A stretch of 64,000 nt of DNA from Anaeramoeba ignava BMAN (taxonomy: Eukaryota; Protista; Anaeramoebae), in assembly GCA_028826165.1 (NCBI GenBank), contig JAPDFW010000056.1, positions 557,627-621,626 of the forward strand, written 5' to 3'. Below are positions 2,245 to 64,000 of this stretch, one piece after another. Under the pieces are notes generated by a model. It worked only from the letters and a program-made list of their open reading frames with translations, did no database searches and was not told the DNA's origin. The position numbers and the translations under genes are program-made. Every line of letters begins with the position of its first letter. The stretch's first letter is position 1.

Positions 2245-4850
2245 AGAATTAAAATTAATTAATATTTTGAAATAAATTAATTAAAATTAATTAAATATTT
2301 GAAAATAAATTGATTAAATTTAATTAAATATTTTGAAATAAATTGATTAAATTTAATTAAATATTTTGAAATAAATTGATTAAATTTAATTAAATATTTT
2401 GAAATAAATTGATTTAATTTAATTAAATATTTGGAAATAAATTAATTAAAATTAATTAAATATTTGGAAATAAATTGATTTAAATTAATTAAATATTTTG
2501 AAATAAATTAATTTAAATTAATTAAATATTTTGAAATAAATTGATTAAAATTAATTAAATATTTGGAAATAAATTAATTAAAATTAATTAAATATTTTGA
2601 AATAAATTAATTTAATTTAATTAAATATTTGGAAATAAATTGATTAAAATTAATTAAATATTTGGAAATAAATTGATTAAAATTAATTAAATATTTGGAA
2701 ATAAATTAATTAAAATTAATTAAATATTTGGAAATAAATTAATTTAAATTAATTAAATATTTGGAAATAAATTAATTTAAATTAATTAAATATTTGAAAT
2801 AAATGAATTAAATTTAATTAAATATTTGGAAATAAAATTAATTAAATATTTTGAAATAAATTAAAATTAATTAAATATTTGGAAATAAATTAATTAAAAT
2901 TAATTAAATATTTTGAAATAAATTGATTAAAATTAATTAAATATTTTGGAAATAAATTGATTAAAATTAATTAAATATTTTGAAATAAATTGATTAAAAT
3001 TAATTAAATATTTTGAAATAAATTAAAATTAATTAAATATTTTGAAATAAATTGATTTAAAATTAATTAAATATTTTGAAATAAATTGATTTAATTTAAT
3101 TAAATATTTTGAAATAAATTAATTTAAATTAATTAAATATTTTGAAATAAATTAATTAAAATTAATTAAATATTTGAAATAAATGAATTAAATTTAATTA
3201 AATATTTGAAAAATAAATTAATTAAATTTAATTAAATATTTTGAAATAAATTGATTAAAATTAATTAAATATTTGGAAATAAATTAATTTAAATTAATTA
3301 AATATTTGGAAATAAATTGATTTAAATTAATTAAATATTTGGAAATAAATTGATTAAAATTAATTAAATATTTTTGAAATAAATTGATTTAATTTAATTA
3401 AATATTTTTGGAATAAATTAAAATTAATTAAATATTTTTTAAATTAATTAAATTTAATTAAATATTTGGAAATAAATTGATTAAAATTAATTAAATATTT
3501 GGAAATAAATTAATTAAAATTAATTAAATATTTTGAAATAAATTGATTTAAATTAATTAAATATTTTGAAATAAATTGATTAAATTAATTAAATATTTGG
3601 AAATAAATTGATTAAAATTAATTAAATATTTGGAAATAAATTGATTAAAATTAATTAAATATTTGAAAATAAATTGATTAAAATTAATTAAATATTTTGA
3701 AATAAATCGATTTAAATTAATTAAATATTTTGAAATAAATTAATTTAAATTAATTAAATATTTTGAAATAAATTGATTTAAATTAATTAAATATTTGGAA
3801 ATAAATGAATTAAATTTAATTAAATATTTTGAAATAAATTAATTTAAATTAATTAAATATTTTTGAAATAAATTAATTTAAATTAATTAAAATATTTGGA
3901 AATAAATTAATTTAAAATTAATTAAATATTTGGAAATAAATTGATTAAAAATTAATTAAATATTTGGAAATAAATTAATTTAAAATTAATTAAATATTTT
4001 GAAACCTAAATTAATTTAAAATTAATTAAATATTTGGAAATAAATTAATTAAAATTAATTAAATATTTGGAAATAAATTGATTTTAAAATTAATTAAATA
4101 TTTGGAAATAAATTAATTTAAATTAATTAAATATTTTGAAATAAATTGATTTAAAATTAATTAAATATTTGGAAATAAAAATTTAAATTAATTAAATATT
4201 TGGAAACAAATTAATTTAAATTAATTAAATATTTTTGAAATAAATTGATTAAAATTAATTAAATATTTTGGAAATAAATTAATTAAAATTAATTAAATAT
4301 TTGGAAATAAATTAATTAAAATTAATTAAATATTTTGGAAATAAATTAATTTAAATTAATTAAATATTTGGAAATAAATTGATTAAAATTAATTAAATAT
4401 TTTGAAATAAATTGATTAAAAATTAATTAAATATTTTGAAATAAATTGATTTAAATTAATTAAATATTTGGAAATAAATTGATTAAAATTAATTAAATAT
4501 TTTTGAAATAAATTAATTAAAATTAATTAAATATTTGGAAATAAATTAATTTAAATTAATTAAATATTTGGAAATAAATTGATTAAAATTAATTAAATAT
4601 TTTGAAATAAATTAATTTAAATTTAATTAAATATTTTGAAATAAATTGATTAAAATTAATTAAATATTTGGAAATAAATTAATTAAATTTAATTAAATAT
4701 TTGGAAATAAATTGATTAAAATTAATTAAATATTTGGAAATAAATTGATTAAATTTAATTAAATATTTTGAAATAAATTAATTTAAATTAATTAAATATT
4801 TGGAAATAAATTAATTTAAATTAATTAAATATTTGGAAATAAATTAATTA
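2245..4850. repeat. ~33-bp AT tandem satellite (AATTAATTAAATATTTGGAAATAAATTGATTAA), roughly 80 copies
   Basis: Directly visible tandem array between two divergently transcribed genes. Confidence 0.9.
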
Positions 4851-4930
4851 AGAACAAAAAAGGAAAAAAATTATTTTTTATTTTTTATTTTTTTCATTTT
4901 TTTCATTTTTTTCATTTTTTTTTCTTAATA

Positions 4931-35402: not shown

Positions 35403-35641
<239 letters not shown>

Positions 35642-35926
35642 GTTTCGATTTTCAAAAAGAAAAAGAAAAAGAAAAAGAAAAAAAATGAAAGAAGGAAGAA
35701 TTTTTATTGATTTGAAATGAAAAAAAAAAAGAAAAAGAAAAAAGAGAAAAAATTAAATTCTTCCAAAACTTCTGAAATTGAAGTAAGAAATTTGTTTGAA
35801 ATCCAATCAATATGGATTCATCAAGAAATTGAATTAAATTGAATTGAATTAAATTAAATTTGAAAATAAATTCTTTTAGTTCTTTTGTTCTTTGGATTTG
35901 GGAAGAAATAAAATGGGAAATCAACT

Positions 35927-38900
35927 TCATTTTTGGTTATTCTTCTCCTAAAAAAAATAAAAAAAATAAAAATGAATTAAGTTAGTAAAAATCCTTTATT
36001 GAAATTATTTTTAAATTTAATTATTTACAGACTATTTATTAAATAATAATAATATAATTAATTAATTTTTGATTTTATTTTATTATTTATTATTTTAAAT
36101 TTAATAAATATTTTTAAATTTAATTATTTACATGCTATTTATTAAATAATAATAATAATAAATATTAATTAATTTTTGATTTTATTATTTATTATTTTGA
36201 ATTTAATAAATATTTTTAGATTTAATTATTTACATACTATTTATTAAATAATAATAATAATAAATATTAATTAATTTTTAATTTTATTTTATTATTTATT
36301 ATTTTAAATTTAATAAATATTTTTAGATTTAATTATTTACTGACTATTTAAATAATATTAATAATAATAAATATTAATTAATTTTTAATTTTATTTTTAT
36401 TATTTATTATTTTAAATTTAATAAATATTTTTAAATTTAATTATTTACATCCTATTTATTAAATAATAATAATAATAAATATTAATTATTTTTTAATTTT
36501 ATTTTATTATTTATTATTTTGAATTTAATAAATATTTTTGAATTTAATTATTTACATCCTATTTATTAAATAATAATAATAATAAATATTAATTAATTTT
36601 TAATTTTATTTTATTATTTATTATTTTGAATTTAATAAATATTTTTAGATTTAATTATTTACAGACTATTTATTAAATAATATTAATAATAAATATTAAT
36701 TAATTTTTAATTTTATTTTATTATTTATTATTTTGAATTTAATAAATATTTTTGGATTTAATTATTTACCCATTTATTTAAATAATATTAATAATAAATA
36801 TTAATTAATTTTTGATTTTATTTTATTATTTATTATTTTTAAATTTAATAAATATTTTTAGATTTAATTATTTACCCACTATTTATTAAATAATAATAAT
36901 AATAATAAATATTAATTAATTTTTGATTTTTAATTTTTAATTTTATTATTTATTATTTTGAATTTAATAAATATTTTTAGATTTAATTATTTACTGCTAT
37001 TTATTAAATAATAATAATAATAAATAATAATTAATTTTTAATTTTTATTTTATTATTTATTATTTTAAATTTAACAAATATTTTTAGATTTAATTATTTT
37101 ATTTATTTATTAAATAATAATAATAATAATAATAAATATTAATTAATTTTTGATTTTATTATTTATTATTTTAAATTTAATAAATATTTTTAGATTTAAT
37201 TATTTACTTTCTATTTATTAAATAATAATAATAATAAATATTAATTAATTTTTAATTTTATTTTATTATTTATTATTTTGAATTTAATAAATATTTTTGG
37301 ATTTAATTATTTACTTTCTATTTATTAAATAATAATAATAATAAATATTAATTAATTTTTAATTTTATTTTTATTATTTATTATTTTGAATTTAATAAAT
37401 ATTTTTAGATTTAATTATTTACAGACTATTTATTAAAAAAATAATAATAATAATAATAAATATTAATTAATTTTTGATTTTATTTTATTATTTATTATTT
37501 TAAATTTAATAAATATTTTTAAATTTAATTATTTACTTCTATTTATTAAATAAATATTAATAATAAATATTAATTAATTTTTGATTTTATTTTATTATTT
37601 ATTATTTTAAATTTAATAAATATTTTTGGATTTAATTATTTACTGGCTATTTATTAAATAATAATAATAAATATTAATTAATTTTTAATTTTATTTTATT
37701 ATTTATTATTTTAAATTTAATAAATATTTTTAGATTTAATTATTTACTTTCTATTTATTAAATAATAATAATAATAAATATTAATTAATTTTTGATTTTA
37801 TTTTATTATTTATTATTTTAAATTTAATAAATATTTTTAAATTTAATTATTTACTTTCTATTTATTAAATAATATTAATAATAAATATTAATTAATTTTA
37901 ATTTTATTTTATTATTTATTATTTTAAAATTTAATAAATATTTTTAAATTTAATTATTTACTGGCTATTTATTAAATAATAAATAATAATAAATATTAAT
38001 TAATTTTTAATTTTATTTTTATTATTTATTATTTTTAAATTTAATAAATATTTTTAAATTTAATTATTTACTTTCTATTTATTAAAATAATAATAATAAT
38101 AAATATTAATTAATTTTTGATTTTATTTTATTATTTATTATTTTAAATTTAATAAATATTTTTAAATTTAATTATTTACATCCTATTTATTAAATAATAA
38201 TAATAATAAATATTAATTAATTTTTGATTTTATTTTATTATTTATTATTTTAAATTTAATAAATATTTTTGGATTTAATTATTTACTTTCTATTTATTAA
38301 ATAATAATAATAATAAATATTAATTAATTTTTTATTTTTATTATTATTTATTATTTTAAATTTAATAAATATTTTTGGATTTAATTATTTACTTTCTATT
38401 TATTAAATATTATTAATAATAAATATTAATTAATTTTTGATTTTATTTTTATTATTTATTATTTTAAATTTAATAAATATTTTTGGATTTAATTATTTAC
38501 ATCCTATTTTTAAAAATAATAATAATAATAAATTATTAATTAATTTTTTAATTTTATTTTATTATTTATTATTTTGAATTTAATAAATATTTTTAAATTT
38601 AATTATTTACCCACTATTTAAATAATAATAAATATTAATAAATATTAATTAATTTTTGATTTTATTTTATTATTTATTATTTTTGAATTTAATAAATATT
38701 TTTGGATTTTAATTATTTACTTTCTATTTATTAAATAATAAATAATAATAAATATTAATTAATTTTTGATTTTATTTTATTATTTATTATTTTGAATTTA
38801 ATAAATATTTTTAGATTTAATTATTTACATCCTATTTATTAAATAATATTAATAATAAATATTAATTAATTTTTGATTTTTTATTTTATTATTTATTATT

Positions 38901-41551
38901 TTGAATTTAATAAATATTTTTAGATTTAATTATTTACTCTCTATTTATTAAATATTAATAATAATAAATATTAATTAATTTTTAATTTTATTTTATTATT
39001 TATTATTTTTAAATTTAATAAATATTTTTAAATTTAATTATTTACTTTCTATTTATTAAATAATAATAATAATAAATATTAATTAATTTTTGATTTTATT
39101 TTATTATTTATTATTTTTGAATTTAATAAATATTTTTAGATTTAATTATTTACTGGCTATTTATTAAATAATAATAATAATAAATATTAATTAATTTTTG
39201 ATTTTATTTTATTATTTATTATTTTGAATTTAATAAATATTTTTAAATTTAATTATTTACATCCTATTTATTAAATAATAATAATAATAAATATTAATTA
39301 ATTTTTAATTTTATTTTATTATTTATTATTTTGAATTTAATAAATATTTTTAGATTTAATTATTTACTTTCTATTTATTAAATAATATTAATAATAATAA
39401 ATATTAATTAATTTTTTAATTTTATTTTATTATTTATTATTTTAAATTTAATAAATATTTTTAGATTTAATTATTTACTTTCTATTTATTAAATAATAAT
39501 AATAATAAATATTAATTAATTTTTGATTTTATTTTATTATTTATTATTTTGAATTTAATAAATATTTTTAAATTTAATTATTTACCTTCTATTTATTAAA
39601 TAATAATAATAAAATAAATATTAATTAATTTTTGATTTTATTTTATTATTTATTATTTTGAATTTAATAAATATTTTTAGATTTAATTATTTACATTCTA
39701 TTTATTAAATAATAATAAATAATAATAAATATTAATTAATTTTTGATTTTTATTTTATTATTTATTATTTTTAAATTTAATAAATATTTTTAAATTTAAT
39801 TATTTACTTTCTATTTATTAAATAATAATAATAATAATAAATATTAATTAATTTTTGATTTTATTTTATTATTTATTATTTTGAATTTAATAAATATTTT
39901 TAAATTTAATTATTTACAGACTATTTATTAAATAATAATTAATAATAAATATTTTTTTTTGATTAGATTAATATTTTGAAATTTTAAAAAGAAAAAGAAA
40001 GGAAAAAATTGAGAAAATGGAATATTTATTTTCAAACTCAAAAAATAATAAAAAAGAAAGAAAATTTTACTTTCTATTTATTTTATCAATAATTTAGATT
40101 TTAACATTAAAAATTATTTCTTTATTTTAAAAAATAATAATTTACTTTCTATTTTTTTATTGAAGGAAATATTTTGAATTGAAATTATTTTTAATGAATT
40201 TATTGAATGAAAAATATTTACTTGCTATTTTTTGTTTAAATGAAAATAAGAAATTTTGGAAAATGAAAGGAAAAATATTAATAATTAAGAATTGAAAGAA
40301 TAATTAAATATTCTTGAAAAAATAATTAGGAATAAATTTACTTCTGGTTGCTTTTCCTTTTCAATTTGTTGTTTTTCTTGAACTAAATTTTGTTTTTGAC
40401 TTTTCAATTTGTTGCTTTTCTTGTATTAAATTTTGTTTTTCCATTTTCAAATTGTTGATTTTTCTTGAACTAAATTTTGTTTTTTTTTCAATTTTTTTCT
40501 TGAATTAAATCTTTTTTTTGATTTTCAAATTCTTTTTTTTCTTGTATTAAATCTTTTTTTTGATTTTCAAATTGTTGTTTTTCTTGAACTAAATTTTGTT
40601 TTTGATTTTCAAATTCTTTTTTTTCAATTATTATTTGTTTCTTTGTTTTGTTAAAATTTTCAATCTATTATTGATTTTAAAAAGATTATTTTTGAATTAA
40701 ATTTGAAAAGAAAAGAAAGTAAAATAAATTACATGTTGATTAATTAATTTGAAAGTAATGTGAGAAGGAAAAAAAGAAAATTTTTGGATTTCATTCATTT
40801 GATATTCTGTAATTGGATGAAGAGATTGAACTTGTTGTAATAAATGAAAAATTAAGTTAGAAAATTCATTTTGTTGATTTTTTGAATCTGGTTTTCGATT
40901 TTTTGTTTGTGTTTCTAAATTATTATGTTTGAACCATTCAATAATTAAATCAGGAATTAAATCAAGTTTATTAGCTTTTTTGTTTGAAAGAATCATTTCA
41001 ATGAAACAAATAATTTCATTTTGTTTAAGGTTTTGAATTTGGTTTTTTTGGATCATTTTATTAATATTCTGGATTAAAAAATCTGCACAAGATTGAATAA
41101 GGAAATCTGAAGAAATTCTTTTAGATTTGGAATAAAAATTAACTAAATTATATTTAGTTAGTGATTCTTGAATTTCTTTTTGGATTCTAATTTGAAGTTT
41201 TGGTAGCATTAGTTTATCAGCTAAAATGTAATAATGATCAAAGAATTGTTGATTAATTTGAATCTCTCCAGTGTATAAAAAACGGATAACAGAATAAACA
41301 ATTTCAAATTCAAATTGAGGAAAATTGATTTCAGTAATAAATTTTGATCGAAATAATGCATGAAAAAATTGGCTTCTTGAACTTAAAACTAATTTGTGAC
41401 AACGAAAAGATTTTAAGTTTTTACCACAAATTATTGTAAAATCAAAAAGAGATTCTTCAGTTTCCAACATTTTTTTGAAATCAGTTGAGCATTCAGAAGA
41501 AAGTAAATCATCAAGTTGTTTCTTTGTTAATTGTAATAAGTTGTTATTCAT
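35927..41551 (-). CDS. BTB/BACK protein with coiled-coil exon and C-terminal tail encoded by ~40 single-codon exons; large exons 41551-40733 and 40664-40342, putative last exon 35947-35927
   Basis: BTB motif FDFTIICG...FRCHKLVLSSRSQFFHALF. The ORF continues through a phase-0 intron into EKQQFENQKQNLVQ repeats (several homopolymer shifts at 40400-40500), then a donor at 40341 and serial AG-NNN-GT cassettes. The 3' structure is inferred from splice dinucleotides only. Confidence 0.7.
36005..39950 (-). repeat. 37-unit, ~108-bp tandem array of near-identical intron + variable 3-nt exon
   Basis: Plus strand TTATTTAC-NNN-CTATTT every ~108 bp equals AAATAG-NNN-GTAAATAA on the minus strand. 33 units are intact, two have 2-nt cores (36995, 37537) and two are degenerate (~36770, ~37100). 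Confidence 0.9.
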
Positions 41552-46617: not shown

Positions 46618-46699
46618 TTCCAAAAAGAAAAAATGAAAAAAAAAATTTTTTTTTTAATAATTAATCAATAAGGAATAAGAACTTTTTTTTTCAATAATT

Positions 46700-49600
46700 A
46701 ATTTATAAATTATTTTAAAATATAATTTTATTAATATTTCCAAATTAATTTATTATTTATTATTATTTAATTTTATATATATTTATTAATTAAAATATTT
46801 TAATAAATTTATTTTAATATTTAATTAATAATTTATTTATTATTTATTTATAATTTATTTTAAAATATAATTTTATTAATATTTTCAAATTAATTTATTA
46901 TTTATTATTATTTAATTTTATATATATTTATTAATTAAAATATTTTAATTAATTTATTTTAATATTTAATTAATAATTTATTTATTATTTATTAATTTAT
47001 TTAAAATATAATTTTATTAATATTTTCAAATTAATTTTTATTATTTATTTAATTTTTATATATATTTATTAATTAAAATATTTTAATTTATTTTATTTTA
47101 ATATTTTAATTAATAAATTATTTTATTTTATTTATAATTTATTAATTTTCAAAATATAATTTTATTTATTTTTTTAAATTTTTAATTTATTATTATTTAT
47201 TATTTATTTAATTTTTATATTTATTAATTAAAAATATTTTTAATAAATTTATTTTAATAATTTAATTAATAATTTATTTATTATTTATTTATAACAATTT
47301 TAAAATATAATTTTATTAATATTTTCAAATTAATTTATTATTTATTATTATTTTAATTTTTAAAATAAATTAATTAAATTTTTTTTATTTAATTTATTTT
47401 AATATTTAATTTTTAATTTATTTATTATTTATTTATTTAATTTTTTTAATTTTATATAATATTTTCAAATTTTTATTATTTATTATTATTTAATTTTTAT
47501 AAATTTATTTATTTTTAAAATTATTTAATAAATTAATAAATAAAATTTATTTATTATTTATTTATTATTTATTTATAAATTTATTTTAAAATATAATTTT
47601 ATTAATATTTTCAAATTAATTTATTATTTATTATTATTTAATTTTATATATATTTATTAATTAAAATATTTTAATAAATTTATTTTAATATTTAATTAAT
47701 AAATTATTTATTATTTATTTATAATTTATTTCAAAATATAATTTTATTAATATTTTCAAATTAATTTATTATTTATTATTATTTAATTTTTATATTATTT
47801 ATTAATTAAAATATTTTTAATATATTTATTTTTATATTTAATTAATAAATTTATTTTTTTTAAAATATAATTTTATTAATATTTTCCAAATTAATTTATT
47901 ATTTATTATTATTTATTTTATATTTATTAATTAAAATATTTTAATAAATTTATTTTATTATTTAATTAATATTATTTATTTATTTTATAATTTATTTTAA
48001 AATATAATTTTATTAATATTTCCAAATTAATTTATTATTTATTATTATTTAATTTTTATATATATTTATTAATTAAAATATTTTAATAAATTTATTTTAT
48101 TATTTAATTAATAAATTATTTATTATTTATTTATAATTTATTTTAAAATATAATTTTATTAATATTTTCCAAATTAAATTTATTATTTTATTATTATTTA
48201 ATTTTTATATATATTTATTAATTAAAATATTTTTAATAAATTTATTTTAATATTTAATTAATAATTTATTTATTATTTATTTATAATTTTATTTTAAAAT
48301 ATAATTTTATTAATATTTTCAAATTAATTTATTATTTATTATTATTTAATTTTATATATATATTTATTAATTAAAATATTTTAATAAATTTTATTTTAAT
48401 ATTTAATTAATAAATTATTTATTATTTATTTATAATTTATTTTCAAAATATAATTTTATTAATATTTTCCAAATTAATTTATTATTTATTATTATTTAAT
48501 TTTATATATATTTATTAATTAAAATATTTTAATAAATTTATTTTTAATATTTAATTAATAAATTATTTATTATTTATTTATAATTTATTTTAAAAATATA
48601 ATTTTATTAATATTTTCAAATTAATTTATTATTTATTATTATTTAATTTTATATATATTTATTAATTAAAATATTTTAATAAATTTATTTTAATATTTAA
48701 TTAATAAATTATTTATTATTTATTTATAATTTATTTTCAAAATATAATTTTATTAATATTTCCAAATTAATTTATTATTTATTATTATTTAATTTTATAT
48801 ATATTTATTAATTAAAAATATTTTAATAAATTTATTTTAATATTTAATTAATAAATTATTTATTATTTATTTATAATTTATTTCAAAATATAATTTTATT
48901 AATATTTTCAAATTAATTTATTATTTATTATTATTTAATTTTTATATATATTTATTAATTAAAATATTTTAATAAATTTATTTTAATATTTAATTAATAA
49001 ATTATTTATTATTTATTTATAATTTATTTTTAAAATATAATTTTCAAATTAATTTATTATTTATTATTATTTAATTTTTTATATATATTTATTAATTAAA
49101 ATATTTTAATAAATTTATTTTTAATATTTAATTAATAAATTATTTATTATTTATTTATAATTTATTTTAAAATATAATTTTATTAATATTTTTCAAATTA
49201 AATTATTATTTATTATTATTTAATTTTATATATATATTTATTAATTAAAATATTTTAATAAATTTATTTTTAATATTTAATTAATAAATTATTTATTATT
49301 TATTTATAATTTATTTTAAAATATAATTTTATTAATATTTTCCAAATTAATTTATTATTTATTATTATTTATTTTTATTTATATTTATTAATTAAAATAT
49401 TTTAATAAATTTATTTTAATATTTAATTAATAAACTATTTATTATTTATTTATAATTTATTCTAAAATATAATTTTATTAATATTTCCAAATTAAATTAT
49501 TATTTATTATTATTTAATTTTATATATATTTATTAATTAAAATATTTTAATAAATTTATTTTATTATTTAATTAATAAATTATTTATTATTTATTTATAA

Positions 49601-50690
49601 TTTATTTTAAAATATAATTTTATTAATATTTCCAAATTAATTTATTATTTATTATTATTTAATTTTATATATATTTATTAATTAAAATATTTTAATAAAT
49701 TTATTTTTAATATTTAATTAATAAATTATTTATTATTTATTTATAAATTATTTCAAAATATAATTTTATTAATATTTCCAAATTAATTTATTATTTATTA
49801 TTATTTAATTTTATATATATTTATTAATTAAAAATATTTTAATAAATTTATTTTAATATTTAATTAATAATTTATTTATTTATTTATTTATAATTTATTT
49901 TTAAAATATAATTTTATTAATATTTCCAAATTAAATTTATTATTTATTATTATTTAATTTTATATATATTTATTAATTAAAATATTTTAATAGAATTTAT
50001 TTTTATTATTTAATTAATAAATTTATTTATTATTTATTTATAATTTATTTTAAAATATAATTTTATTAATATTTTCAAATTAATTTATTATTTTATTATT
50101 ATTTAATTTTATATATATTTATTAATTAAAATATTTTAATAAATTTATTTTATTAATTAATTAATAATTTATTTATTATTTATTTATAATTTATTTTAAA
50201 ATATAATTTTTATTAATATTTTCAAATTAAATTATTATTTATTATTATTTAATTTTATATATATTTATTAATTAAAATATTTTAATAAATTTATTTTTAA
50301 TATTTAATTAATAAACTATTTATTATTTATTTATAATTTATTTTAAAATATAATTTTATTAATATTTTCCAAATTAAATTATTATTTATTATTATTTAAT
50401 TTTATATATATTTATTAATTAAAATATTTTAATAAATTTATTTTATTATTTAATTAATAAATTATTTATTATTTATTTATAATTTATTTTAAAATATAAT
50501 TTTATTAATATTTCCAAATTAAATTTATTATTTATTATTATTTAATTTTATATATATTTATTAATTAAAATATTTTAATAAATTTATTTTAATATTTAAT
50601 TAATAAATTTATTTATTATTTATTTATAATTTATTTTAAAATATAATTTTATTAATATTTCCAAATTAAATTATTATTTATTATAATTTA
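46700..50690. repeat. ~145-150-bp almost pure A/T tandem satellite
   Basis: Recurring AAAATATAATTTTATTAATATTTCCAAATTAATTTATTATTT unit. It has essentially no G and no splice-site core. Confidence 0.9.
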
Positions 50691-50727
50691 ATTTTTTTCA
50701 TTTTTTTCATTTTTTTTTAAAATAATT

Positions 50728-59990: not shown

Positions 59991-62105
59991 ATGGATGCTT
60001 TATTGTTTAATTTTTTTGAAGAAGATGAAAGAATTGAAACTCTTGATGAATATGATGATGATAAATTTAATGTAAAAAAAAAAATAATTGAAAAAAATTT
60101 TAATTTATTTTTTATATTAATAATAAAATAGTCAGCTTTAGATTTTTTTGAAGCAATTGATGATAAAAAATCATTTGAAGAATTAGATGAAATTTTAAAA
60201 AATGGATCTGATGTTAATTCAGTTAATGTAAATAAAATTAAAAAAACAAACAAACAAAGGAAAAACATTTTTATTTTATATTTTTGTTATTGATTAATTT
60301 AGGAAGTAAATTAAAATTAAAATTAAAATTAAAATTTATTATTTATTAGAATGTAATTTAATTTAATTTAATTTAATTTAGAATTTGATTATTAAAATGT
60401 TTTAAAAAAAACCTTTTCTTTTTTTTAGTTTGAAACACCTTTATTTTATGTCATTTCAAAAAAAATGAATTTGGAAATGATTAAATATCTTTGTGATAGA
60501 AATGCAAATTTATTTTTTACTAATAATTGTAATGAAAATGCTTTACATTATGCTTTAAAATTTAATTTATCAATTGATATTATTCAATTTTTAATTTCCA
60601 AGAAAATTGATATAAATGCTCAAAATGTAAAAATATTAAATATTAAATATTAATAATTAAATATTAATAATTAAATATTTAGCAAGTAATTATAATAAAT
60701 AAAAGAAAAAGGAAATTGTTTTTATTTTAAAATTTAAATTTAGCAAGTAATTATTATTATTATTATTAATTTAATATGATAAAAATATGAAAAATAAATT
60801 TAAAATTTATATTATGTTTATATTATATTACATTTTATAATTTAAAGAAAGAAACAGTTTTACATATTGAATTAGATAAAAGTAAGCCAAATATTGAAAT
60901 TATTAAATTATTAATTGAATCTGGTGCAAATTTAGATTTACTTGATGTATATATTTTTCTAATTTTTTTAGATTAAATTTTAGTAACAAAACAATTTATT
61001 ATTTATTTTTTAGAAAGTAAATAATTTTTCATTTAAAATATCATTTTAATTCATTTCTTATTTATTAATATTTATTAATATTTTGTTTTTAAAAAAAAAA
61101 GGATGTATTTTTAAAATTAAAATTTATTTTAATTAAATTTAATTTAATTATTTTATTTCCTTTTAAAGAAAAACACACCTTTACATTTAGCTTTAATTAA
61201 AAACGTTTCAGATGAAATTATTAAACTTTTACTTTCAAAAGTGAAAAACTTTGATATTAAAAATGTAATAATATTATTAATAAAAATAAAATTTGAATTT
61301 ATTAATAAATATTAATATAGGAAGTAAAAAAAACAAGATATACCTTTATATTTATTTAATATTTATTTATTTATTTATTAATTATCTAGATGGTAAATAA
61401 TAATTTTTATTTTTATTTATTTAAATTTTTTGGAAATAATATTAAATTTTTAATAGGAAGAAGATTACTTATCATTATCAATAAGAAACAATTCATTAGA
61501 ACATGTTGAAATGATTCTTCAATTTCAAACTGATTTAGAATACAATAATAAAGTATAAAGAAAATAGAATTTTATATTTATATTTATATTTATATTTTAA
61601 AATTTGTTAATTTAACTTAAAAGAGGAGTTATTTAACTTTTGCAATTTTTTCAGGTTGTTCAATTGAAATTATTGAGAAATTAATTGAAAAAGGAATGGA
61701 TATTAATGCAGAAGATGTATATAATAATTTCTTTTTTATTTCTTTTAAATTTCTTTTAAATTTCTTTTAAATTTATAACAAAAAATTAAATAATAGAAAG
61801 TAATTTTATTTATAATAAATTTATATCAAAATATTAAATCTAAATAATATCAATTTAGTTTGGTGATTTCCCAGTTCTTTTAGCTTGCAAACATGAGGAA
61901 TATAAAAAACTTCTTGATTTATTATTTAATAAGGGAATTGATGATATAAAAATTTCAAATGTAAAATTTTCATTTTTCATTTTTTTCATTTTTAAAATGA
62001 TTAAAACTTTTTAATTAAATTAGAATGTAAATATTTAAAAACAAATATAAATTTTTTTTTAAAAAATTAAAATTGATTTTGTTTTTGTTATTAGGCAGTA
62101 AAAAA

Positions 62106-62138
<33 letters not shown>

Positions 62139-64000
62139 CAAAACAAGAATTTAATTTTTATAAATTTATAGAATGAAAATATTCTTCATTTATTAATTAA
62201 TGATCATCCAAATGATCCATTAATTGATGAATTATTAGATAAAGGATTTGATATTAATCAACAAGATGTAATTATTATTTATTTATAAATTTTTTTATAT
62301 TTATTATATTTATTATATTTATTATATATTTTTAAAAAAATAGGTTATTGTAAATTAATTTTAAAGAAAGCAAAACAGATTTTTATTTTTTAATTTTTAA
62401 TTTTTAATTTTTAATTTTTTAAGGGTCGAACAATTCTTCATGTTGAATTACAAAATTCAAGAAATATTGAAAGAATTAAAAAATTAATTAAATTAGGAGC
62501 TGATTTAAATTTACAAGATGTAAATAATATTATTAATATTATCACAAAAAAAAAGATAATTTTAGAAAGAGTTTAATGAAAAAAAATAATAATTGAAATG
62601 AAAAATTAGAAAGTAAAAAAAGAATTAATTTAATTTAATTTAATTTCTTTTAATTTATATTTCTTTTAAATTTTATATTTTAAAGCCAGTAAAATTTAAA
62701 TTTAAATCTTGAAGTAAAAATAATTATATTTATATTTAATATATTTCTCTTTAAGAAACGAACACCTTTTCATTATTTATGTTTTCAACCTTTAGATTTA
62801 GAAATTTTTAATCTTTTTATAGAAAATGGAGCAAATATAAGTATAACTGATGTAAGTAAAAATAAATTATATTTATATTTATATTTATATTTATATTTAT
62901 ATTTATATTTATATTAGAGTGTAAATTTAAGAAATGATTTTATTAATAATATTGATTTATATTTTGTTTATTTTATTAAAAATTTAGCAAGTATTTTTTA
63001 TTTTTCTATTATTATAATTATAAACTAATTAAATAATAAATAAATAAATAAAAAGATTAATTCGCCACTTATTTACATATTAATGAAAAACAGTGATATA
63101 GAACTTATAAAAAGATCAATTAATGAATTTATGAAAACAAAAGAATATCAAGAAAGTGAAGAAAAATCTGTAAGAAATATCAACAAAAAAAATTATTTAA
63201 GTAATTAATAAAATAAAATAAAATTCTTTAAACAAAAAAGTATGTAAAATTTAATTAAATTTAATTATTTTATTTTATTAATTGATTTTAAAACAAAAAA
63301 AGTATGTAAAACTGAATAAAATTAATTTGAATTTAAATTAAATTATTTATTTTGGAAATTAAAATAGTGGACAAAATTATTGTCAACAGTTATATCTAAT
63401 AAAGATACAACACCTGAAATTATTCAATTCTTTGTTGATACTGGAGCAGATTTAAGTGATCAATATTATGTTAGTATTTCATAAATTAATTTAATTTAAT
63501 TTAAAAAAATAATAATAATAATATAAAAAATTATTTCCATTTTCTTTTTTCAAAATTTAGTATGGTGAATCAATAATATGTCAAGCAATTAGAGCAGGAC
63601 AAAATATATCAGTTATTAAAAAATTGTTGAGTTTTAATTTAGAATTGAATCCAAAAGAATATGTTTGATTTTATTTATAAGAAAAAAGAGATAAAATTGA
63701 ATTTTTATTGATTCAAATTTAAATTAATAAAAACTTAGTCATCTCCATCTCCTATTTATGTTGCAATTGAACAATGTCCTGAAAATAATGATTTAATTAA
63801 ATTATTAATTGAAGCAGGTTGTGATGTTAATAATAGAAATGTAAATAATAATATTTCTTTTTTTGATTTAATTAAAAAATTATTATTCTTATTTAGTATG
63901 GTTACTCTGGTTTTGAAAAAGCTTTAATAAATGACGAAGTTTCTATTGAAACTATAAAATTATTAATTGAAGCAGGTGGTGATTTAAATGCGAAAGTAAA
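59991..64000 (+). CDS. Long ankyrin-repeat protein (>=16 repeats, runs off window) with 17 three-nt and one six-nt microexons
   Basis: Main exons 59991-60071, 60132-60227, 60429-60626, 60848-60946, 61169-61264, 61457-61552, 61624-61716, 61859-61960, 62172-62267, 62424-62519, 62756-62851, 63056-63169, 63368-63469, 63561-63662, 63739-63840, 63897-63995. All are multiples of 3, mostly one ankyrin repeat each. Confidence 0.85.

Follow-up and report, generated by a model that had tools for sequence, protein, structure and literature searches.

A tandem repeat downstream of a BTB gene in Anaeramoeba ignava as a possible chain of single-codon exons

The window analysed here, a 64,000-nt stretch of the Anaeramoeba ignava genome, carries a gene annotated as a BTB 'kelch like protein' of this organism and, downstream of it, a repeat of 4.3 kb with near-identical spacers of ~105 nt. 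The public model of the gene, NCBI protein P0001, stops within the first of the introns that lead into the repeat. The parts of the locus, listed in the order in which they would be transcribed, are as follows.

40733..41551, minus strand: exon 1, the BTB/BACK open reading frame (M1-H273), 99% identical to NCBI protein P0001; Pfam PF00651
40665..40732, minus strand: intron 1, 68 nt, GT..AG, from P0001 mapped onto the window and from the sequence
40342..40664, minus strand: exon 2, coiled-coil with 42-nt (14-aa) repeats, ending at the donor that would open the chain; frame broken as assembled
40071..40341, minus strand: lead-in with the putative single-codon exons CAA (40224-40222), AAA (40148-40146) and AAA (40073-40071); its introns are unique sequence
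36029..40070, minus strand: a unique 150-nt intron, then the consensus array (39920-36029), from TRF, unit listing, column variability and G count; 35 AG/GT-bounded units (33 triplets and two 2-nt slots) and two dead units, with G-free introns of ~105 nt
37537..37538, minus strand: damaged unit, AG and GT intact around a slot of only 2 nt (AA)
36995..36996, minus strand: damaged unit, AG and GT intact around a slot of only 2 nt (CA)
35948..36028, minus strand: last intron, 81 nt, unique, with TACTAAC at 35987-35981, a T-run and AG
35927..35947, minus strand: proposed last coding exon, GAG AAG AAT AAC CAA AAA TGA (EKNNQK-stop), phase 0
35785..35811, minus strand: 27-nt element conserved downstream of three homologous arrays, from a pattern search

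The first-pass annotation of this DNA had described a near-constant array interrupted by a variable 3-nt slot, and this description is borne out by TRF, which finds a period of 107 nt with 36.5 copies and 91% matches at 36006-39953, and by the concentration of variability in the slot columns. The slot is also framed by AG and GTAAAT on the minus strand as had been stated, with 38 units bounded by (A/T)AG and GTAAA(A/T), 36 of which have a slot of exactly 3 nt and the other two a slot of 2 nt. In two further dead units (~37107-37099 and 36772-36770) the splice G's are missing, and acceptor AG and donor GT are present at 38 of the 40 array units. The observation that the spacers have G essentially only at their GT and AG ends holds with a single exception, since 83 of the 84 minus-strand G's in 36029-39917 are donor, acceptor or slot G's, and the triplets read as previously reported, with no stop among the intact ones. 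The extent of the repeat requires revision, however, as none of the first four introns (117, 73, 72 and 150 nt) belongs to it, all being unique sequence, and the consensus array occupies only 39920-36029. The downstream flank is likewise to be corrected, the acceptor AG lying at 35949-35948 and the last exon beginning at 35947.

The array is tandem, homogeneous and 96% A+T, with AAA making up 44% of slots, and almost all of its variation lies in the slot. Slot columns have an entropy of 1.3-1.85 bits, compared with 0-0.2 for nearly all intron columns, and a mean pairwise difference of 0.36-0.66, compared with 0.032 for intron columns. Besides the slots, only four columns are variable, and these are C/T dimorphisms (one also with A). 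In two control satellites from the same window (146-bp, 46697-50695; 33-bp, 2247-4851), the most variable 3-column window reached 0.17-0.19, against 0.59 in the array.

The slots show a codon-like composition. This array has no stops in phase 0 as against 8 in phase 1 (P = 0.016, position-independent null), and a slot GC by position of 0.31/0.31/0.08. Across five phase-0 arrays, the 239 slots include no stops where ~12 would be expected (P about 6e-6), GC by position is 0.45/0.31/0.02 as compared with 0.32/0.22/0.10 in the coding sequence of the window, and in 77% of slots the codon is the preferred one of its synonymous set; stops made up 18% of intron control triplets. In five TLDc-gene arrays (95 slots), which have flanking exons in phase 1, the AT-only position is instead slot position 2, which is where split codons would place it, and reading these arrays in phase 1 gives a GC by position of 0.50/0.23/0.06 with no stops, whereas phase 2 gives 24. 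For an ankyrin gene that also lies in the window, exactly two 3-nt exons per hairpin are needed for canonical repeat spacing.

A genome pattern search for the intron family returned 100 matches, all inside four tandem arrays, and none in the control. The four loci include the closest BTB paralogue (on contig C1), which shares 77% amino-acid identity with the gene in the window at a dN/dS of 0.26 and is built alike, with a coiled-coil exon followed by three unique introns, an array, a short last exon and the conserved 3' element. The lead-in introns of the two loci are orthologous (81-87% identity), and the C1 paralogue has a frameshift in its coiled-coil exon and damage in about 7 of its 38 array units. 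Each array has been homogenised separately, the common intron sequence between arrays being limited to the intron ends with array-specific interiors. Pairwise difference inside an array is 0.02-0.05, while divergence between the two loci at their orthologous unique introns is 7-19%. The last intron has homologues at the C1 locus and at a locus on C87; the latter shares the intron type and also has a short last exon and the 27-nt 3' element, and the last exons at the homologous loci end in FK-stop and SD-stop. With 0-1 mismatch, the 27-nt element occurs only in the window (contig C57), at C1:409104 and at C87:270996 (control 0), with one further site, on C100, at 3 mismatches; it probably belongs to the 3' UTR. 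Conservation of slot order between paralogous arrays was not significant (permutation p = 0.5 and 0.6), and therefore no specific tail sequence is preserved. Higher-order repeat copies of the array on C137 show differences at 21-38% of slot bases as against 0.4-4.7% of intron bases. For a REEP gene, considered as a proof of principle for the splicing, a Pfam scan gave only two other loci, and the gene was not taken as such.

As assembled, the reading frame is broken ahead of the array. Exon 2 has three frame breaks, the copies of its 42-nt repeat measuring 42, 42, 35, 44 and 43 nt, and its total of 323 nt is 2 mod 3; the BTB frame meets its first in-frame stop, TGA at 40490-40488, well before the donor. 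The NCBI model bridges the frame break in exon 2 with a non-canonical AT..TA 'intron' (40505-40384), and inspection found no canonical GT..AG rescue of the exon 2 frame. The donor at 40341, previously read as phase 0, is in that phase in the local coiled-coil frame but not in the BTB frame as assembled. This local frame is continuous from the coiled-coil to EKNNQK-stop, but is interrupted as assembled by the two 2-nt slots, with which it would terminate after ...KPKKP and six further residues. The 2-nt slot at 37537..37538 may reflect either a homopolymer error made in the long-read assembly of a repeat or a true frameshift. Nanopore and Illumina reads were combined in assembling the A. ignava genome (PMC11550330), and in this copy the tail is reached by translation only if the frame breaks of the assembly are sequencing errors. 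The central claim of the first-pass annotation, a coding region built from single-codon exons, is upheld in part, with the lack of stops, the G/C at positions 1-2, the phase rotation and the paralogue layout in its favour, and the TGA in the BTB frame and the two 2-nt slots against it.

Protein searches with the BTB region returned NCBI models only, with no EukProt transcript-derived protein for this BTB subfamily, even though the database includes EukProt. A. ignava EukProt Trinity proteins are present in it (P0105, the gene of which is intronless). A search with an ankyrin exon returned a microexon-skipping NCBI model and generic ankyrins, with no transcript source among the ten AT-rich matches, and no description of 3-nt exon arrays was found in the literature, the Anaeramoeba genome papers included.

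Taken at the level of sequence, the 'satellite' may be the 3' part of a BTB-BACK-coiled-coil gene, forming a chain of about 40 single-codon exons, a reading that we put at slightly below even. The repeat would most likely represent a protein tail encoded at one amino acid per exon, and the chain would be genuine, possibly with decay in this copy. Each unit comprises a single codon and, after it, an entire intron of ~105 nt. The introns would be recognised singly and removed in order, every removal extending the upstream exon by 3 bases and setting up the next donor in a manner resembling recursive splicing, and the predicted product is a K/D/P-rich (lysine/aspartate/proline) low-complexity tail of about 40 residues closed by EKNNQK-stop. 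The chain could have originated by tandem duplication of a segment consisting of intron end, codon and intron start, and its uniformity may be maintained as the cloned introns undergo unequal crossing-over and gene conversion with one another, processes that would add, delete or swap single codons in frame. Selection would then be directed at the triplets (no stops, amino-acid-specifying G/C) and at the splice G's. As clones of one another, the introns would allow recombination between them to add, remove or reorder single amino acids without loss of frame. The arrays may thus act as a codon-shuffling cassette by which one locus could give rise to many tail or loop variants over generations, and the whole-triplet swaps between the otherwise identical C137 repeat copies are consistent with this DNA-level version. 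A putative somatic, combinatorial version at the level of splicing, in which alternative splicing of any subset of the exons would give many tail or loop variants even within one cell, appears improbable.

The broken frame could also mean that the chain evolved as coding sequence but that the protein, here and in the C1 paralogue, now ends inside the coiled-coil exon, leaving the array as a spliced or retained 3' UTR relic with codon-like features still uneroded. This fits the three off-length repeat copies and the in-frame TGA in exon 2, the independent frameshift in the coiled-coil exon of the paralogue, the damaged units (4 of 40 here in addition to those of the paralogue), the BTB subfamily being without a transcript-derived protein in the databases searched, and the high share of AAA among slots. 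We nonetheless consider such decay rather less likely, as the BTB part is under purifying selection, judging from its dN/dS, and the splice G's are intact in all but two units, in contrast to three to four intronic C positions at which conversion to T is about half complete. Conservation at three loci also extends to the last intron, the last exon and the 3' element, and indels in A-rich tandem repeats are typical of the residual error in long-read assemblies that short reads cannot polish.

If the triplets never reached the mRNA, either through removal of the whole 4.4 kb (40342 to 35947) or through skipping of all units, the array would simply be an amplified intron. With phase 0 on both flanks, direct joining would preserve the local frame, the TLDc loop is of normal length when its array is skipped, and the public models of the array-bearing genes P0124 and P0154 skip the microexons; 3-nt exons cannot be called by gene finders, however, and so public models are uninformative either way. 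We doubt this reading strongly, since it leaves unexplained the absent stops, the confinement of G/C to codon positions 1-2, the phase rotation of the AT-only position and the strict 3-nt slot length over ~330 slots, and since the ankyrin repeat spacing requires inclusion. Still less credible, and in our view highly improbable, is a non-genic repeat, whether an ordinary satellite, a mobile 'introner'-type array or a host gene for intron-encoded small RNAs. The tandem, homogeneous and AT-rich character of the array would suit a satellite, but the codon signature of the slots does not, and satellites of the same window lack a comparable hot slot; a non-coding satellite was rejected on the difference between slots (0.36-0.66) and introns (0.03), the control satellites reaching at most 0.17-0.19. 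The near-identical introns do resemble introners, yet the family is confined to four tandem arrays and never dispersed in unrelated genes, and introner-like mobile introns were ruled out by the location of 100 of 100 matches in these arrays. Tandem snoRNA host genes likewise combine conserved introns with variable short exons, and the introns of this array fold somewhat better than shuffles (z = -2.85); this fold signal is missing from two of the four arrays, the arrays have only intron ends in common, and no Rfam match was found on three homologous arrays, so that a small-RNA (snoRNA) host was rejected.

Should the triplets of the favoured single-codon chain be spliced in, exon size would be at its physical limit some 40 times in a row, and intron definition by the A. 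ignava spliceosome would have to proceed with no exon context at all. Sequence of this kind would go unseen by standard gene finders and spliced aligners, the public models in the present case being truncated or exon-skipping, and 'satellite' regions of very AT-rich protist genomes may conceal coding sequence. Recombination could edit a protein codon by codon, offering a testable route by which the expanded families of BTB, ankyrin and TLDc proteins could acquire hypervariable tails or binding loops.

Several known systems share features with the proposed chain. In recursive splicing (ratchet points, RS exons), a long region is removed stepwise via acceptor and donor sites that abut each other, every step restoring the 5' exon; such sites contribute nothing to the mRNA, or an exon that is discarded, whereas the A. 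ignava chain would leave one codon per step. In multigene families of the MHC type, conversion and recombination keep introns alike while selection keeps exons different, and the resulting signature of uniform introns and diverse exons is likewise seen here, although in those families it lies between alleles or loci with full-size exons, and in A. ignava within one gene at single-codon grain. Introners are similarly present as many near-identical introns per genome, but are dispersed in unrelated genes, unlike the four tandem arrays of the A. ignava family. The micro-exon genes (MEGs) of Schistosoma contain very short symmetric (multiple-of-3) exons, reported at 3-81 bp (PMC10526429), and resemble the array in having coding sequence mostly in tiny symmetric exons, low-complexity variable products and a frame that is kept upon exon loss or gain. 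The exon lengths of MEGs vary, however, their introns are long and unrelated (up to 5 kb) and their proteins are secreted, whereas the array would have one-codon exons after a cytosolic-type BTB domain. A schistosome-type micro-exon gene was accordingly rejected, the introns being tandem clones of ~105 nt and the N-terminus BTB/BACK rather than a signal peptide exon. Isolated 3-nt microexons are found in animals, plants and dinoflagellates (for examples, see PMC8042270 and PMC12584245), and these are likewise bounded by AG and GT, the known ones being spliced by the ordinary spliceosome. Such microexons occur singly in long introns and often need special enhancers, whereas the A. ignava array would comprise about 40 consecutive microexons, each with a short intron of its own.

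The array on the minus strand downstream of the BTB gene is a real and striking feature. Tandem Repeats Finder places 36.5 copies of a 107-nt period at 36006-39953, and the minus-strand unit reads ...TTTAATAAATAG-NNN-GTAAATAATTAAAT..., with AG and GTAAA[A/T] framing 38 units. The slot between these boundaries is 3 nt long in 36 of the 38 units and 2 nt long in the other two, and a further two units have lost their splice G's. The first-pass annotation described a near-constant array with a 3-nt variable slot, and across 35 aligned units the variation is indeed concentrated there, with column entropies of 1.3-1.85 bits in the slot against 0-0.2 bits in all but a few of the ~105 intron columns, and mean pairwise differences of 0.36-0.66 against 0.032. 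The restriction of spacer G's to the GT and AG ends also holds, as the 84 G's in 36029-39917 comprise 35 in donors, 33-34 in acceptors and 12-14 in slots, with a single one elsewhere. The most variable three-column window reaches 0.59 in the array, against <=0.17-0.19 in two ordinary satellites of the same window (46697-50695, 146-bp units, ~1% G+C; 2247-4851, 33-bp units, 6-10% G+C). The triplets of the proposed peptide had been read correctly and the downstream acceptor and last exon are present, although the last exon starts at 35947; the introns are near-identical within the consensus array, but the first four are unique sequence outside the repeat.

The window (15.8% G+C, standard genetic code) is the end of contig C57 in a 42.8-Mb assembly. 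ORF 41551-40697 shares 99% identity with an NCBI 'kelch like protein' of Anaeramoeba ignava and encodes a BTB domain.

Features of the BTB gene and its array as assembled
41551-40733, minus strand: exon 1, BTB/BACK
between exons 1 and 2, minus strand: intron 1, canonical
40664-40342, minus strand: exon 2, coiled coil of 42-nt repeats, ending ...EKQPE/GTAAAT
37538-37537, minus strand: 2-nt slot AA
36996-36995, minus strand: 2-nt slot CA

Three repeat copies in exon 2 are off-length (35, 44 and 43 nt), which brings the exon to 323 nt (2 mod 3); as assembled, the BTB frame runs into a TGA at 40490-40488, and a search for a canonical intron able to restore the exon 2 frame found none. The donor reported as phase 0 is so in the local frame, but only there, the BTB frame being broken upstream. 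With the 2-nt slots as assembled, the local frame would stop soon after ...KPKKP. The indels could be genuine, or they may be leftover long-read errors in tandem A-rich repeats, as the genome was assembled with Nanopore plus Illumina reads (PMC11550330). The NCBI model spans the frame breaks with a non-canonical AT..TA 'intron' at 40505-40384, continues with a GT..TA intron at 40341-40226, one base off the canonical AG, and ends in the first lead-in intron, and so is no guide for this gene; this suggests that the model was forced across the breaks, or that coordinates shifted after polishing. Among database proteins, no transcript-derived protein was found for the BTB subfamily, though Trinity-derived EukProt A. 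ignava proteins (e.g. P0105) were included, and the single mappable one comes from an intronless gene. Just downstream of the BTB gene lies a perfect (GATT)60 microsatellite (35403-35641), and a run of the GATT motif occupies the matching relative place at the paralogous locus on contig C1 (L045 ~3900-3990).

Five arrays with phase-0 flanks provide 239 slots, none of which is a stop, against ~12 expected under independent slot positions (P about 6e-6), while phase 1 of the same arrays gives 7-22 stops each and control triplets from introns contain 18% stops. G+C by slot position is 0.45/0.31/0.02 in these arrays versus 0.32/0.22/0.10 in coding sequence of the genome, and 77% of slots carry the most-used synonymous codon. 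The C57 array alone, as first noted, lacks stops among its intact triplets (P = 0.016), with G+C of 0.31/0.31/0.08. Judged by sequence, the triplets behave like codons, which is the main positive evidence for a coding chain, and as regards origin and constraint the C57 feature is very probably a series of exons of one codon each. The earlier proposal of a coding region stands on its codon signature but not on the assembled frame, broken by the TGA and the 2-nt slots, and it is uncertain that the C57 copy is still translated.

Five BTB-TLDc arrays (95 slots) served as a phase-1 control, separating codon signal from splice-site effects. The exons on either side of them are in phase 1 (TTT GGA T/GT ... 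AG/CT GAT), and raw slot G+C of 0.22/0.05/0.53 becomes 0.50/0.23/0.06 with 0 stops in phase 1, against 24 stops in phase 2; thus the AT-only 'wobble' position moves to the third codon base set by the flanking exons. Four tandem BTB-BACK-TLDc paralogues at C1:1056000-1075999 (L032, L055, minus) have 15-30 single-codon phase-1 exons in the GPSFG-to-DIEL loop, where ~100 other TLDc paralogues are intronless, with a loop of 1-10 residues; a direct splice over the TLDc array would likewise keep the frame. Within the window, an ankyrin-repeat gene (59991-63924, plus strand) serves as a second control; it has nine hairpin (inter-repeat) introns, each with exactly two AG-NNN-GT 3-nt candidates, one further intron with a single 3-nt exon and another with a 6-nt exon. 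GxD-to-TPLH spacing equals that of the intronless repeat junction only with the two extra residues, and NCBI model KAJ5077940.1 omits all these exons, leaving hairpins two residues too short.

The closest paralogue (C1:413657-414553) shares 77% protein identity, with dN 0.094, dS 0.356 and dN/dS 0.26 over the BTB part. Its layout matches that of C57. The coiled-coil exon, which contains one frameshift, is followed by three unique introns with C57 orthologues (microexons CAA, TAT and AAA) and by ~35 array units; then come a last intron of unique sequence that carries a branch-site motif, a last exon that is very short (FK, stop) and, downstream, the same 27-nt element plus a run of (AATC)n. The introns of this array have the C57 sequence but lack an internal block of ~32 nt, and measure 73-76 nt vs ~105 nt. 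The third homologous array, on contig C87 (L051, C87:270500-280499, minus strand 8002-826), has ~75 units whose slots, mostly NTT, GCT, GGA and GAA, read as long hydrophobic stretches with charged residues on the flanks (LILLIFGFLIFIFILIAIERFR...); phase 0 is the only open phase, and the stretch immediately upstream showed no BTB domain. On contig C137 (L031/L052, 610-622 kb, plus), a ~12-kb run holds >100 units of the C57 intron family, acidic S/D/E/N/H slots preceding a nine-unit higher-order repeat (RNEPR...), with the first unit seemingly lacking a donor. Distant paralogues on contigs C28 and C140 have six microexons (CCA CCT AAA GAA GAA CCA) between a coiled-coil exon and ankyrin-repeat exons, which is probably the seed state. 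In a BTB-ankyrin paralogue, L048 (C28:1-8000, minus), a possible 9-nt exon (AAAAAGGAG) lies within 3252-2998, between linker exon and first ankyrin exon, where the public model has TD instead.

Slot composition by array
C57: K/D/P-rich
C1: R/Y/N/D/Q-rich
C137: acidic S/D/E/N-rich
C87: hydrophobic

The intron-end pattern has 100 genome copies vs 0 in the control, all inside four tandem arrays (C57, C1:409-413 kb, C87:271-278 kb and C137:610-622 kb), and the family is therefore not introner-like in dispersal. Intron interiors are particular to each array and uniform within it (pairwise difference 0.02-0.05), whereas orthologous unique introns differ by 7-19% between C57 and C1; each array was thus homogenised, or expanded, on its own once the loci had diverged. 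C57 intron variants form a mosaic in which every combination of C/T sites occurs, which speaks for recombination or conversion among the units. Copies of the C137 higher-order repeat differ by 0.4-4.7% in introns and 21-38% in slots, with two-base changes in one slot amid hundreds of identical flanking bases; this is most simply read as the replacement of whole triplets through short conversion tracts, which leave no trace where the flanks are identical. The order of slots shows no conservation between C57 and C1 (p = 0.5), and it is composition and codon character that are kept across arrays, not a sequence. Slot diversity exceeds that of the introns >10-fold, an excess that is only partly accounted for; G/C at codon positions 1-2 lies far above its intronic level, which speaks for selection on the amino acids encoded.

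What is demonstrated is how the array is built, its codon-like signature, the existence of homologous loci and homogenisation array by array. As a mechanism, the introns would be defined one at a time by the sole available G's and taken out in order, each removal appending one codon; the tail would be a basic, disordered C-terminal extension, standing in place of the ankyrin domain of more distant paralogues. The main alternative, possible though less probable, is a copy in decay, its array by now a relic within the 3' UTR. The broken frame of both paralogues and the presence of damaged units fit this reading, whereas the kept splice G's and the conserved 3' end speak against it. That the triplets are never included in mRNA is unlikely, since this cannot account for the codon signature. 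Least plausible of all is a satellite, introner array or small-RNA host, given the confinement of the intron family and its array-specific interiors; the control satellites have no comparable hot slot, and for a small-RNA host the three homologous arrays gave no Rfam match and an inconsistent fold signal.

With regard to a single-codon exon chain, no description of such runs between cloned introns was found in the literature, and the papers on the Anaeramoeba genomes say nothing of microexons. Single 3-nt exons are known from animals, plants and a dinoflagellate (PMC8042270, PMC12584245). The nearest kind to the C57 chain is the schistosome micro-exon genes, with symmetric exons of 3-81 bp (PMC10526429), but in these, unlike in the C57 chain, the introns are long and unrelated and exon length varies.
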